Below are positions 52,200 through 57,898 of a stretch of 64,000 nt of DNA, piece by piece. Each line of letters begins with the position of its first letter. The first letter of the stretch is position 1. The DNA lies in IMG/VR virus record IMGVR_UViG_3300040801_001224, positions 248,001-312,000 of that record. One strand, 5' to 3'. The notes under the pieces were generated by a model. That model did no database searches and was not told the origin of the DNA. It was given only the letters and a program-made list of their open reading frames with translations. The position numbers and the translations under genes are program-made.

Positions 52200-52519
52200 T
52201 GGTAGCATCTGATTGTAATCCAGCAGTTATTGAAACGATAACTCAGAACGTAGAAAAGCTCAAAAGGTTTCAGGTATATGAGCAGACCTTTGAATTTGAA
52301 AGATCAGATACCCTGGAAAAATATGTAACACTTGTGACACCGGGGTTGTATTGTGTAACAACTCACATGGATATCCTTCCACTTGTAACATTTTTACATG
52401 AATCGGCCATAAGCTTGTGGGCAGTAGGTGCTTATAAGGACTCAGATCCCTTGACGGCTGTATTCACTAATCCGGAAGATACGTTCTTATTTAAGATACT
52501 GGGGGGTGGCATTAAATGA
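52199..52519 (+). CDS. protein of the FxxxxDxxxFxL family
   Basis: VFTNPEDTFLFKI. Confidence 0.6.
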   Translation: MVASDCNPAVIETITQNVEKLKRFQVYEQTFEFERSDTLEKYVTLVTPGLYCVTTHMDILPLVTFLHESAISLWAVGAYKDSDPLTAVFTNPEDTFLFKILGGGIK

Positions 52520-52719
52520 AACGCATTGTGTTTAACAGTAAATCACAAAAAGAATGTATGGGAGTAATAGAACATCTTGAAGAAGCAGGAATAGACTTTG
52601 CCCCCTACAACATGGATTATGTCGCAACGGGCAAGTGGGCATTAAAGCTTACATTTAGAACTAAAGAAGATGAATTCTTATTTAAGATGATGTATAAGTC
52701 TAAGTCACTCTTACCTTGA
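52516..52719 (+). CDS. small protein of the FxxxxDxxxFxL family
   Basis: LTFRTKEDEFLFKM. Confidence 0.65.
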   Translation: MKRIVFNSKSQKECMGVIEHLEEAGIDFAPYNMDYVATGKWALKLTFRTKEDEFLFKMMYKSKSLLP

Positions 52720-52744
52720 CAAGATCACTTTTCTATTGTATAAT
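52716..52744 (+). promoter_or_regulatory. sigma70-type early promoter of NAD operon
   Basis: TTGACA-17-TATAAT. Confidence 0.85.
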
Positions 52745-52820
52745 GTATACATTAGATAAATAATATTAGTAAAGGGATAGACCCATTACTAATCAAAACA
52801 TTAATTATAGGGAGTCTATA

Positions 52821-53867
52821 ATGTCTAAACAATACGATCTAATCGTCTTTATAGGGCGATGTGAGCCTAACCATATAGGTCACAATAAAATTATCCGCAA
52901 AGCTACAGAAATGTCCAACAGTGTTCTAGTACTGTTGGGAAGCGCAAATCGACCACGTTCAATTAAAAACCCATTTACTTTTGAAGAAAGAAAGAAGTTC
53001 ATCCAAAGAATATTTGGTTCTGCTAAAGTTGAAGGTATCATTGATTACGACTACCAGGATACACTGTGGACTGAGCAAGTCTACCAAGCAGTAGACAACA
53101 ACCTTAAGGACCGTGGGTTAAATCCACGTGATGCTAAAATTGCTGTCCTTGGTCATGAGAAAGATGAATCATCATACTACTTACAATTATTTCCTACCTG
53201 GAAGTTCTTAGACTTTGGAAAGTTTACTGGAGATGGTAATCAATTAATCGACGCCACCAAAATACGTGAACTTTACTTTGAAGGTCATTTAGAATATTTG
53301 CGTGGTGTACTTGATCGCACTACTTATAACGAAATGTCTGCTTTTATGATTACCAAAGAGTATAAGCAGTTGGTTAAAGAGTATGAGTTCATTAAAAAGT
53401 ATAAAGAGCAATGGGCCGATAGTCCTTATCCACCAACATTTATGACTGTGGATGCCATTGTTATTCAAGGCAGTCACGTACTACTCATCAAGCGTAAGTC
53501 AGAACCAGGCAAAGGGCTGTGGGCCATGCCAGGTGGTTTCATACAGCCTTATGAAGTATGTAAGGATGCTATGTTGCGTGAGCTTAAGGAAGAAACAAAG
53601 CTAAAAGTACCTACTCCAATATTAGAAAAGAGCATTGTACACCAGCAATTGTTTGATGATCCAGGCCGTTCAACGCGGGGGAGAACATTCACACAGGCGT
53701 TCTTAATTCATCTAACAGGCGGTAACGGTGAGTTACCAAAAGTCAAAGGTGCTGACGATGCTGAAGAAGCACGTTGGGTTCCACTACACGAATTTGAGAA
53801 CATGAGTGCAGAAATGTATGAGGATCATTACTCAATTGTACACTTAATGAAAGGTTTTATAAACTAA
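52821..53867 (+). CDS. nadM: bifunctional NMN adenylyltransferase / ADP-ribose pyrophosphatase
   Basis: FIGRCEPNHIGH, LGSAN, KNPFTFEER, DAT.IR; Nudix GG......A..REL.EET. Confidence 0.95.
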   Translation: MSKQYDLIVFIGRCEPNHIGHNKIIRKATEMSNSVLVLLGSANRPRSIKNPFTFEERKKFIQRIFGSAKVEGIIDYDYQDTLWTEQVYQAVDNNLKDRGLNPRDAKIAVLGHEKDESSYYLQLFPTWKFLDFGKFTGDGNQLIDATKIRELYFEGHLEYLRGVLDRTTYNEMSAFMITKEYKQLVKEYEFIKKYKEQWADSPYPPTFMTVDAIVIQGSHVLLIKRKSEPGKGLWAMPGGFIQPYEVCKDAMLRELKEETKLKVPTPILEKSIVHQQLFDDPGRSTRGRTFTQAFLIHLTGGNGELPKVKGADDAEEARWVPLHEFENMSAEMYEDHYSIVHLMKGFIN

Positions 53868-53916
53868 AGTCCTAAGAATAGACTTGGGCAATCAACCAAT
53901 AAAGGGAGACTTTATT

Positions 53917-55413
53917 ATGAAAAACTTCGAAAACGGCCTACTGAGCCAAATCAGAAACACATATGGTATCGCAAGCGATACTGACTCTTACAAACTATCT
54001 CACCACGTCCAATACAAGTTGGGTGCTGACATGATGATTTCATATATTGAATCACGTGGCGGTGAGTTTGATGAAACTGTATGGTTTGGCCTACAGTTAA
54101 TCATTAAAGAATACTTGATGCAACCTATTACCAGCGAACAAGTTGATAACATGATTGCGTTTGAAAAAACACACCTTGGCGGTAACGTTACTGGTGACTT
54201 GGAAATTGCTCTACGCACTGTAGTCGAAGATTATGATGGCATGTTGCCAATTCGCATACGTGCTGTGGAAGAAGGTTCAATCATCCCAGTTAAAAATGTG
54301 CTGGCAACCATTGAAACCAGTGTTCCAGACCCACGCATCTTTAGCTTAGTTTCTTACTTTGAGACTAAGATCCTACGTGTTTGGGCACCAACTACTGTAG
54401 CCACTATGAGCTACAATATCCGCAAGCATATCCTTGCTGGCTTAGAACTAACGAGTGAAGATCCACAAGGACAAATTCCATTCAAGTTACACGACTTCGG
54501 TGCTCGAGGTGTGAGCTCATTGGAGACTGCGGCATTTGCTGGTGCTGGACACTTAGTTTCATTCCTGGGTAGTGATACAACCATTGCTATCATGGCCGCT
54601 AACTTGGGGTACAATGAAGAAATGAGTGCTTTTAGCATCCCAGCTTCAGAACACAGCACAACCACAATGTGGGGTCCTGATGGTGAGCAAGCGTTCGTAG
54701 ACAACATGTTTAAGAACTACGCTAAAGAAGGAGCTATCTTTGCTACAGTAGCAGACAGCTTTGATATTCTTAACTTCGTAGATCGGATTGCGCCTAAGAT
54801 GAAAGACCGTTTGATTGAGTCTGGTGCTACATGGGTTATACGCCCTGACAGTGGTGATCCAGTACTCACTCCGATTAACGTTGTTGAAAAGCTCGCCGAA
54901 CACTTTGGTTACGAAGTCAATGCTAAGGGCTTTAAAGTTCTTAACAATGTACGTGTTATCCAGGGTGACGGCATCAATATTGATGATGTACGTGACATTG
55001 TTGATATCATGATCCAGAAGGGTTGGAGTATTGACAACATTGCGTTTGGTATGGGCGGTGGCCTGTTACAAAAGAACAACCGTGATACACAGAAGTTCGC
55101 AATGAAATGCTGTGCCGCACGTATTGATGGCGAATGGGTTGATGTGTACAAAGACCCTAAGATCTACGATCCAAACACTTGGGGCGTAATCAACAAGCAG
55201 GGTGACAACGGCTTTAAAACATCCAAGAAAGGACGCTTAGAGCTTATGTACAACTCACAGACTGACACTTGGGAGACTATGCCTAAGAGTATTGCCAACG
55301 ATTACAATGGCAAGTTTGGGTGGACTAAGAAGCTGGAAACAGTATATGAAAACGGCAGATTAGTCAAAGACCTAACCCTGGCGCAGGTCCGTGCCAACGC
55401 CGGAACATTCTAA
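53917..55413 (+). CDS. nadV: nicotinamide phosphoribosyltransferase
   Basis: DTDSYK.SH, LHDFGARG, PASEHS, VADSFD, IRPDSGDP, IQGDG, GMGGGLLQ. Confidence 0.95.
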   Translation: MKNFENGLLSQIRNTYGIASDTDSYKLSHHVQYKLGADMMISYIESRGGEFDETVWFGLQLIIKEYLMQPITSEQVDNMIAFEKTHLGGNVTGDLEIALRTVVEDYDGMLPIRIRAVEEGSIIPVKNVLATIETSVPDPRIFSLVSYFETKILRVWAPTTVATMSYNIRKHILAGLELTSEDPQGQIPFKLHDFGARGVSSLETAAFAGAGHLVSFLGSDTTIAIMAANLGYNEEMSAFSIPASEHSTTTMWGPDGEQAFVDNMFKNYAKEGAIFATVADSFDILNFVDRIAPKMKDRLIESGATWVIRPDSGDPVLTPINVVEKLAEHFGYEVNAKGFKVLNNVRVIQGDGINIDDVRDIVDIMIQKGWSIDNIAFGMGGGLLQKNNRDTQKFAMKCCAARIDGEWVDVYKDPKIYDPNTWGVINKQGDNGFKTSKKGRLELMYNSQTDTWETMPKSIANDYNGKFGWTKKLETVYENGRLVKDLTLAQVRANAGTF

Positions 55414-55462
55414 ATCTCCGGTAACCACTCGAAATGGGAGGGTAATTTATCCTCCCATTCCC

Positions 55463-55491
55463 TTGACATAACCACTTTTCTGTAGTATAAT
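55463..55491 (+). promoter_or_regulatory. sigma70-type early promoter with CCAC box
   Basis: TTGACA-17-TATAAT. Confidence 0.85.
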
Positions 55492-55524
55492 ATGTATAAA
55501 TAATATTAAAGAGGACTTTATTAT

Positions 55525-56754
55525 ATGGCAACTTACGGCAAATCAGGACTATCACCAGAGATGGAACGTACCATCATATCAGCTCGTGTACGTATGCTGA
55601 TTAGTGCTCCTTTCTTTGGTACCCTTGCCACACGCCTAATCATCAAGAAAGCTGGTGATTGGTGCCCTACATTTGCTACTGATGGCAAATATCTGTATGT
55701 TAATCCAGAGTTTATGAAAGAGCTCGACAAGCATGAATTAGAGTTTGTTGTTGGTCATGAGGTGATGCACTGTGTTTATGACCACATGGGCCGACGTGGT
55801 GGACGTGATCCCAAGCTATGGAATGCGGCCGCAGACTTTGTTATTAACCTTGAGCTTGTAGATCAGAACGTTGGCAAAATGCCCAAGATGGGTCTGCTGG
55901 ACGAGAAGTATCGTGGCTTAAGTTCAGACGAGGTTTACGAACTGCTTGAAGAAGAGCAAGACAAGAACGGCGACCAGGGTTATGAAACACTGGACGTTCA
56001 CATGGAGCCTAACAGTGGTGGTGGTGATGGTGATGGTGATGGTGATGCTACCAACGGTCCTATCTCAATCTCAGAAGAAGAGCGTAAAGCTTTAAGCGAT
56101 GAAATTAAACAGGCTGTGATGGAAGCCGCTAAGGCCGCCGGTGCTGGCAATGTTCCAGGTGGTGTCAAGCGTATGATTAAAGATTTGGTTGAGCCTGAAA
56201 TGGACTGGCGTGAGCTATTACAAGCTGAACTGCCAAGCATGTTTAAAGATGACTTTACTTTCTCACGTCCTTCACGTAAGAATAGTTCTTTAGGTGGTAT
56301 CTACTTGCCTGGACAGGACCAAGCTAATCGTGTAGAATGTGCTATTGCTATTGACACATCAGGTTCCATTGGTGAGTCAATGCTACGTGACTTTATTTCA
56401 GAAATTAAAGGCATCATGGACCAGTTCGATGACTTTGTTATCACCATGTGGTTCTTTGATACGCAGACATACACCGTACACAAGTTCAATCCAGATAACT
56501 TACATGACATTCTGGAAGTTGAAATTGAAGGTGGCGGTGGTACTGACTTCGTCTGTAACTTTGACTTAATGAAAGAAATGGATTTAGTTCCTGAGAAGTA
56601 TATTTGCTTTACAGATGGATTTCCGTGGGACAGTTGGGGTGATCCGGATTATTGCTCCACAATCTTTGTAGTACATGGGAGTCCAGATATCACTGCTCCT
56701 TTCGGACAGACCGTTTACTACGATCACAAGAAAGAAGGAACAACTAAGGGTTAA
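55525..56754 (+). CDS. metallopeptidase-like plus vWA domain protein (DUF2201-type MoxR partner)
   Basis: ATDG, HEVMH, WN.A.DFVIN, DTSGS MIDAS, GGGGTDF, FTDG. Confidence 0.92.
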   Translation: MATYGKSGLSPEMERTIISARVRMLISAPFFGTLATRLIIKKAGDWCPTFATDGKYLYVNPEFMKELDKHELEFVVGHEVMHCVYDHMGRRGGRDPKLWNAAADFVINLELVDQNVGKMPKMGLLDEKYRGLSSDEVYELLEEEQDKNGDQGYETLDVHMEPNSGGGDGDGDGDATNGPISISEEERKALSDEIKQAVMEAAKAAGAGNVPGGVKRMIKDLVEPEMDWRELLQAELPSMFKDDFTFSRPSRKNSSLGGIYLPGQDQANRVECAIAIDTSGSIGESMLRDFISEIKGIMDQFDDFVITMWFFDTQTYTVHKFNPDNLHDILEVEIEGGGGTDFVCNFDLMKEMDLVPEKYICFTDGFPWDSWGDPDYCSTIFVVHGSPDITAPFGQTVYYDHKKEGTTKG

Positions 56755-57763: not shown

Positions 57764-57898
57764 TGCTGATACTCCTGTTTAGTATTAGAGTAGTCGGAAC
57801 TGCCATTCGCGGACTACACTTCTATTTACCACTTCTACTTGACATAACCACTATTTCCTGCTATAATATACATAATATAAATTAACAGTGAGTATTCA

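Follow-up and report, generated by a model that had tools for sequence, protein, structure and literature searches.

NAD homeostasis is known to be controlled at the RNA level by two riboswitches, NAD+-I (the nadA motif) and NAD+-II (the pnuC motif), which are cis-acting leaders of NAD-pathway genes. NAD+-I is found in Acidobacteria, whereas NAD+-II is described in Streptococcus and masks the ribosome-binding site (PMC8632094). Both have conserved internal loops and a pseudoknot. At the DNA level, NrtR is the ADP-ribose-responsive repressor of nadM-nadV, prs-nadV and related operons; it regulates nadM-nadV in Synechocystis, binding a 21-bp palindrome with a GT-N7-AC core and acting on transcription (PMC2330246). 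Other short RNA hairpins are read by proteins. In the MS2/R17 coat protein-replicase hairpin and the T4 gp32, gp43 and RegA operators, a short hairpin at the ribosome-binding site has a variable stem and a specific loop, each regulated cistron carries its own copy, and control is exerted on 30S loading. In pyr operon leaders (Rfam RF00515), a hairpin with a purine-rich loop of the A-N-A-G-A type is bound by PyrR, a type I phosphoribosyltransferase (PRTase) that doubles as an RNA-binding regulator and works by transcription attenuation. Finally, the guanidine-II (mini-ykkC) riboswitch and the two-site targets of CsrA both consist of two small tandem hairpins separated by a variable linker, with the second at the Shine-Dalgarno (SD) sequence.

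In phages, NadM and NadV form NARP2 (NAD+ reconstitution pathway 2: Nampt plus Nmnat), a counter-defense that rebuilds NAD+ after depletion of the Thoeris, DSR, SIR2 or TIR type, and which is thought to be metabolically costly because it consumes PRPP (bioRxiv 10.1101/2024.02.11.579819). Its regulation has not been described in the papers searched. Here, both NAD-salvage genes of a 328-kb phage were found to be preceded by a small two-hairpin RNA leader that recurs, with compensating stem changes, before the same two genes in other phages and in many Proteobacteria, and that is probably a new gene-specific switch on NAD+ rebuilding.

The nadM-nadV locus and its two leaders

The DNA analyzed, referred to below as the window, is a stretch of 64,000 nucleotides corresponding to bases 248001-312000 of a 328,096-bp IMG/VR phage record (IMGVR_UViG_3300040801_001224) with direct terminal repeats and 40% G+C. 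The ORF at 52821-53867 (+) encodes a protein of 348 aa with cytidylyltransferase-like (PF01467) and NUDIX (PF00293) domains, identifying it as NadM-Nudix, a predicted bifunctional NMN adenylyltransferase and Nudix ADP-ribose pyrophosphatase whose homologues are annotated NadM in many phages. The ORF at 53917-55413 (+) encodes a protein of 498 aa with NAMPT_N (PF18127) and NAPRTase (PF04095) domains, identifying it as NadV, a predicted nicotinamide phosphoribosyltransferase (NAMPT) that is 45-50% identical to proteobacterial NadV. The two adjacent genes fit the definition of NARP2, as inferred from domain content. No near relative of the locus was found by megablast against INPHARED, and the closest NadM homologues are 31-47% identical. 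A perfect sigma-70 promoter (TTGACA, 17-nt spacer, TATAAT; 12 of 12 hexamer matches) lies at 52716-52744 (+) and is one of 109 sites within one mismatch of the consensus in the genome, 101 of them on the + strand. The transcript start predicted from it lies near 52751-52753, so that the first hairpin would begin about 12-14 nt into the mRNA. A GC-rich hairpin at 55434-55458 (+), lacking a U-tract and directly abutting the next consensus promoter, closes the nadM-nadV unit.

The original prediction, made from the sequence alone, described matching ATAGA-loop hairpins before the two genes, and each of its sequence statements proved correct. The complete nadM copy of the leader spans 52765-52823 (+). 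Its hairpin 1 (52765-52793) has an 8-bp outer stem, an A.A mismatch, a 3-bp GGG/CCC inner stem and the loop AUAGA at 52777-52781, closed by G52776-C52782; it folds at -10.1 kcal/mol (z = -3.8; 0 of 200 shuffles fold as well). The GTCTAT at 52814-52819 is an exact complement of ATAGAC. Hairpin 2 (52804-52822), which begins after a linker of 10 nt, has a 7-bp A/U-rich stem, holds the SD (GGGAG, 52810-52814) mostly in its loop, pairs the A and U of the start codon and folds at -4.2 kcal/mol. The nadV copy spans 53866-53919 (+) and starts inside the nadM stop codon (TAA, 53865-53867). Its hairpin 1 (53871-53888; -6.2 kcal/mol) has 6 bp including one G.U and a 6-nt loop, AAUAGA (53877-53882), which is closed by G-C and is a one-base-longer variant of AnAGA also carried by L018 (L numbers denote loci of the comparison set). 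Hairpin 2 (53898-53916; -4.3 kcal/mol) follows after 9 nt, with a 7-bp stem (AAUAAAG with CUUUAUU) and the loop GGAGA, and ends directly before the ATG at 53917. AAAGTC (53866-71) and GACTTT (53908-13) are complementary, and the minimum free energy fold of the nadV leader uses that pairing.

Taken alone, the resemblance of the two hairpins is weak evidence, because a bare ATAGA or AATAGA loop closed by at least 3 bp occurs 71 times on the two strands of the 328-kb genome. The case is carried by comparison with other genomes, conservation of the leaders having been named beforehand as a test.

Conservation in phages and bacteria

The 160 nt upstream of 58 IMG/VR nadM homologues and of their nadV genes were examined, and the same architecture was found repeatedly, in phages that share only 31-47% NadM identity. 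Hairpin 1 has a stem that differs from genome to genome but a loop that reads G-AUAGA-C, with the variants AAAGA, AACGA and GUAGA; a G-poor linker of 8-20 nt follows; and a second short hairpin holds the SD in its loop, with its 3' arm ending at or inside the AUG. In several phages the first copy precedes a small unrelated ORF, X, that heads an X-nadM operon. In total, the element precedes nadM (or such an ORF) and nadV in about 27 phage genomes or contigs. The 5' flank AAGUCC of the nadV hairpin 1 is shared with other phage nadV leaders, the AAGUCC...GGCA flanks appearing in L003, L008, L010, L018, L019 and L057.

Both helices covary. On a MAFFT alignment of 37 leaders, 78% of cells in the two helices pair, against about 39% when the partners are slid, 14 of 16 pairs change on both sides, and the covariation score is 0.556 against 0.167 for shuffles. 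RNAalifold on this unfitted alignment recovers hairpin 1 but not hairpin 2, so that hairpin 2 rests on explicit pair counts and on enrichment against control genes (below). A first covariance model (R1), whose seed included the window copies, hits only the coding strand, and only before nadM, nadV or X, in 407 kb of phage loci, and in the phage's own genome it hits only the two leaders (46.7 bits for nadM and 31.4 bits for nadV). R1 also finds unseeded copies before both genes in three cultured phages, Roseobacter phage DSS3P8, Xanthomonas phage LucasX and Synechococcus phage BUCT-ZZ01. However, about half of the phage nadM loci lack a model hit, and none was found in KVP40-like phi-pp2, Caulobacter RBC57, phiN3, Xoo-sp13, Staph1N, ICP1, adrianh, phiKp_19, BcepSauron and RSL1, although RSL1 and BcepSauron have a look-alike by eye, with C-(A/U)AGA-G loops.

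In bacteria, a search for related loci with the single NadV protein gave only 2 loci, whereas an alignment query yielded 80 nadV loci. On these, R1 gave 57 hits, all on the gene strand and at two fixed positions: the nadM leader, where in X. translucens the motif starts a few bases after a TAGCAT -10 element, and the nadM-nadV intercistronic space. The carriers are Xanthomonadales, Burkholderiales, Caulobacter and Chromatiales. Their stems are GC-rich and quite different from the phage stems, but the loops are the same (AUAGA, ACAGA or AAAGA), and their hairpin 2 is stable (-8 to -10 kcal/mol) and buries the AUG. The cyanobacterial loci sampled and Jeongeupia lack the motif, and Variovorax has GUUGA loops before both genes.

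A second model (R2) was built from 75 leaders, none from the window, although these had been gathered with R1. On this alignment, 82.6% of cells pair against about 40% for slid partners, and the covariation score is 0.614 against 0.169 for shuffles, reached by 0 of 500 shuffles. R2 finds exactly two sites in the window and in the whole 328-kb genome, 52765-52823 (45.8 bits, E 1.4e-9) and 53866-53917 (27.1 bits, E 7.3e-5), with nothing else up to E = 10. In whole-genome scans, three of five bacterial genomes gave both leader sites, one gave a single site and one gave none, the only other hit being weak (E 0.34), and five complete phage records gave exactly two significant hits each. In a class-level sample of 151 genomes, the true hits were again at nadM-nadV loci, while the false positives were palindromic terminators in one genome (G152) and one intragenic site in another (G151). 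The independent-model E-values and the exclusive gene association exclude a chance resemblance, which could otherwise have been argued from the frequency of bare mini-hairpins.

The same data bear on the possibility of a DNA-level operator of the NrtR, NadR or NiaR type, or of a transcription terminator or attenuator, readings that are considered very unlikely together with chance. The position of the bacterial nadM copy just downstream of the -10 element, where repressors often bind, would be compatible with an operator. However, the arms vary freely and covary while the asymmetric center is conserved, the opposite of a palindromic operator; the NrtR core and its 21-bp palindrome are absent; intercistronic copies have no promoter; and all significant hits in the phage and bacterial nadV loci lie on the coding strand. 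No terminator-like site was called at either leader of the phage, where hairpin 1 is followed by CAAAACAUU or CAAUCAACC and not by a U-tract.

Rfam 15 gave no match at E <= 10 at positions 52600-54000 of the window, nor at the leaders of five bacterial loci at E <= 1, and this covers NAD+-I, NAD+-II, PyrR and mini-ykkC. In the literature searched, no paper combined nadV or nadM with a riboswitch or RNA motif, and no such element is mentioned in the NARP2 paper (bioRxiv 10.1101/2024.02.11.579819), a survey of NAD in viruses or three Breaker/Weinberg motif catalogs.

Masking of the ribosome-binding site

The original prediction proposed that the SD is occluded by pairing of the loop ATAGAC with GTCTAT in the nadM leader, and that in the nadV leader an AAAGTC/GACTTT clamp touches the SD. 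These pairings are not supported as conserved features. The ATAGAC/GTCTAT pairing is the only 6-nt case among 72 distinct homologous leaders, with complements of 5 nt in L010, L012 and L074, and mean loop-to-downstream complementarity equals the shuffled expectation (3.08 vs 3.11 nt). The AAGUCC of the clamp is conserved in a nadV subclass, but its partner is not kept in related nadV leaders. Likewise, no conserved site complementary to the loop was found in the nadM or nadV coding regions of 16 genomes. Pairing of the loop with another RNA, whether in cis, with a distant mRNA segment or with a trans-acting small RNA, is therefore held to be very unlikely, a small RNA common to such diverse hosts and phages being, by inference, implausible.

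What is conserved instead is the local hairpin 2. SD-in-loop hairpins of at least 5 bp precede 67% of nadM and nadV starts, against 22% of neighboring genes (Fisher p = 6e-17). In a scan of this phage that allows G.U pairs, the nadM hairpin scores 8 bp and the nadV hairpin 7 bp, and only 15 of 335 genes score 7 bp or more, nadM and nadV among them. SD hairpins nevertheless occur at some unrelated genes (29 of 335 at 6 bp or more), one being the neighboring DUF2201 gene, which has no hairpin 1, and the phage copies of hairpin 2 are weak.

The interpretation offered with the original prediction, a shared SD-occluding leader that is riboswitch-like or autoregulatory and belongs to no assignable family, is thus partly supported: the two leaders share one element, which is specific to the NadM/NadV pair, involves the ribosome-binding site and matches no known RNA family.

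A proposed trans-acting partner for the hairpin 1 loop

The conserved part of hairpin 1 is restricted to its loop and closing pair. The G-C closing pair is kept in 73 of 74 distinct leaders, and loop positions 1, 4 and 5 are the same in every row of the alignment as read, whereas stem length (3-9 bp), internal loops and linker length all vary. Only this loop, its closing pair and the SD are conserved, and no conserved junction, internal loop or pseudoknot that could form a ligand pocket was found. The loop also falls into lineage-specific classes, shared by both leaders within a genome: AnAGA in most carriers, AACGA in L034, L044, L055 and L056, GAUGUA or GUUGUA in RaK2-like phages, C-(A/U)AGA-G in RSL1 and BcepSauron, and GUUGA in Variovorax, the variant classes having been identified by eye. 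This means repeated concerted change, as expected for a co-evolving macromolecule, and favors a protein partner over a metabolite, although concerted changes could also reflect altered ligand specificity or simple common descent of each clade's operon. Since the element travels with the genes across Alpha-, Beta- and Gammaproteobacteria, their phages and a cyanophage, the partner must be universal or encoded in the cassette.

Our preferred explanation, judged about as likely as not, is that each cistron carries its own copy of a leader RNA that gates translation initiation. In this view, hairpin 2 would allow the 30S subunit to load only when it opens, and the loop of hairpin 1 would act as the sequence-specific recognition element for a trans-acting partner that sets how often hairpin 2 is open. 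We take the partner to be a protein encoded with the cassette, most simply NadM or NadV acting as an autogenous translational repressor of both cistrons, although neither has a recognized RNA-binding domain. The existence of the element, its structure, conservation, strand-specific placement, occurrence as one copy per cistron, restriction to nadM and nadV and enclosure of the ribosome-binding site in hairpin 2 are established by the present comparison, whereas the translational effect, the direction of control, the reading of the loop by a partner, the identity of that partner and any protein or ligand binding are inferred.

A riboswitch is possible but less likely. The two hairpins and the linker would then fold around NAD+, NMN, nicotinamide, ADP-ribose or PRPP, binding would shift the SD/AUG hairpin, and NadM and NadV would be made only when NAD+ is low or its breakdown products rise. 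In support, the element is strictly associated with two enzymes of one cofactor pathway, lies in the 5' leader with the SD inside the structure, is portable between distant hosts, as expected for a protein-independent sensor, and occupies the regulatory niche that NrtR fills for nadM-nadV in Synechocystis (PMC2330246). Very small two-hairpin riboswitches such as guanidine-II exist. Against this, the conserved core is only a 5-nt loop plus its closing pair, a poor fit for a ligand pocket and the signature of protein-recognized hairpins, and the loop differs between lineages although the metabolite would be the same everywhere. If this tentative reading were true, the leader would be a new, very small riboswitch class shared by Proteobacteria and their phages, for a metabolite such as NAD+, NMN, nicotinamide or ADP-ribose, letting a phage sense defense-triggered NAD+ depletion directly in the mRNA and switch on NAD+ reconstitution only then.

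A constitutive structural leader with no sensing role is also considered unlikely. Hairpin 1 would protect the 5' end from RNase E or stop upstream ribosomes, the linker would be a 30S standby site, and hairpin 2 would simply tune translation of two costly enzymes to a fixed low level. Such a role is suggested by the position of hairpin 1 within a few nucleotides of the predicted transcript start in bacterial nadM leaders and several phage nadV leaders, by the unstructured, G-poor linker, by the SD hairpins at other genes of this phage and by the presumed cost of NARP2. However, a purely structural hairpin does not need a near-invariant loop, would not need the same loop in two leaders of one genome and would not be restricted to exactly two genes per genome.

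Comparison with known regulatory systems

Translational operators such as those of MS2/R17 and T4 resemble the present element in the short hairpin at the ribosome-binding site, the variable stem with a specific loop and the copy carried by each cistron. Here, however, the specific loop sits on a separate upstream hairpin and not on the SD/AUG hairpin, the element is shared by bacteria and many unrelated phages, and the binding protein is only postulated. PyrR provides a precedent for a PRTase acting on its pathway's mRNA through a similar loop, but the Rfam model does not match and PyrR is unrelated to NAMPT. Unlike mini-ykkC, in which both loops are ACGR and kiss, and unlike CsrA targets, which need GGA in the upstream loop as well as at the SD, hairpin 1 reads AGA (CGA in the AACGA loop class) in the 75 aligned leaders, and only hairpin 2 carries GGA. 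The motif moreover occurs in a cyanophage and in Caulobacter, and CsrA is not known to be common in those hosts.

A dedicated, portable RNA control element on each of the two cistrons implies that expression of this counter-defense is gated rather than constitutive. The element defines a regulon of exactly two genes, provides a testable handle of 50-60 nt with clear mutants in the loop, stem 1 and stem 2, and is a useful annotation marker for NARP2 cassettes and their horizontal transfer. NAD+-I and NAD+-II regulate different genes (nadA and pnuC) in different taxa and show no sequence or structure match to it, having conserved internal loops and a pseudoknot where this element has only a conserved hairpin loop. 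NrtR regulates the same target genes, but the element described here behaves as RNA, with covarying stems, strand specificity and intercistronic copies. Altogether, this previously uncatalogued leader would add a third RNA-level solution for NAD homeostasis beside the NAD+-I and NAD+-II riboswitches, and an RNA counterpart to the protein repressor NrtR.

Promoters and additional hairpins around the NAD-salvage genes

Across the whole phage genome, about 100 near-consensus sigma-70 promoters were found, almost all of them on the + strand, including, in the window, those at 52716-52744, 55463-55491 and 57839-57867. Many share a conserved spacer (TTGACA..ACCACTTT..), and in genome region 6.6-22 kb the -35 element is flanked by an AAGTGG...CCACTT inverted repeat, which looks like a binding site for a phage or host regulator. 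Downstream of nadV, a GC-rich hairpin (GGGAGG with CCTCCC) is located at window 55434-55458, 20 nt after the nadV stop. It has no U-tract and abuts the next promoter. It may be a 3' stabilizer or a non-canonical terminator.

The ribosome-binding site of the next gene (window 55505-55527) is almost identical to hairpin 2 of the nadV leader (AAAG-AGGA-CUUUAUUAU), but it has no hairpin 1 and lies directly behind a consensus promoter. This gene, at 55525-56754, encodes a DUF2201 / VWA-like putative metallopeptidase. SD hairpins alone are therefore not exclusive to the NAD genes in this phage. A third AATAGA mini-hairpin (AGG-AATAGA-CTT) was also observed at window 52587-52598, inside the small ORF 52516-52719 and upstream of the nadM promoter. 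It was detected by neither of the two covariance models of the leader motif (R1 and R2), and its occurrence is probably due to chance.

Sequence context of the motif in other phages and bacteria

In eight other phage loci (L008, L009, L011, L014, L017, L019, L043 and L057), an ORF starts at the ATG of the leader motif. On present evidence, at least three unrelated families of such small ORFs (67-125 aa) sit between the motif and nadM, and they appear to be translationally coupled to nadM. Weak false positives of the model were traced to repeated bidirectional palindromic terminators containing GGGGACAGACCCC, found in loci L174 and L176 (contig C1 of the sampled genome G152, G152:C1:360864-361771), which scored on both strands. 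In a bacterial MAG (locus L128), a cobalamin riboswitch (93 bits, L128:3915-4146) lies directly downstream of the nadV gene, but it is unrelated to the leader motif.
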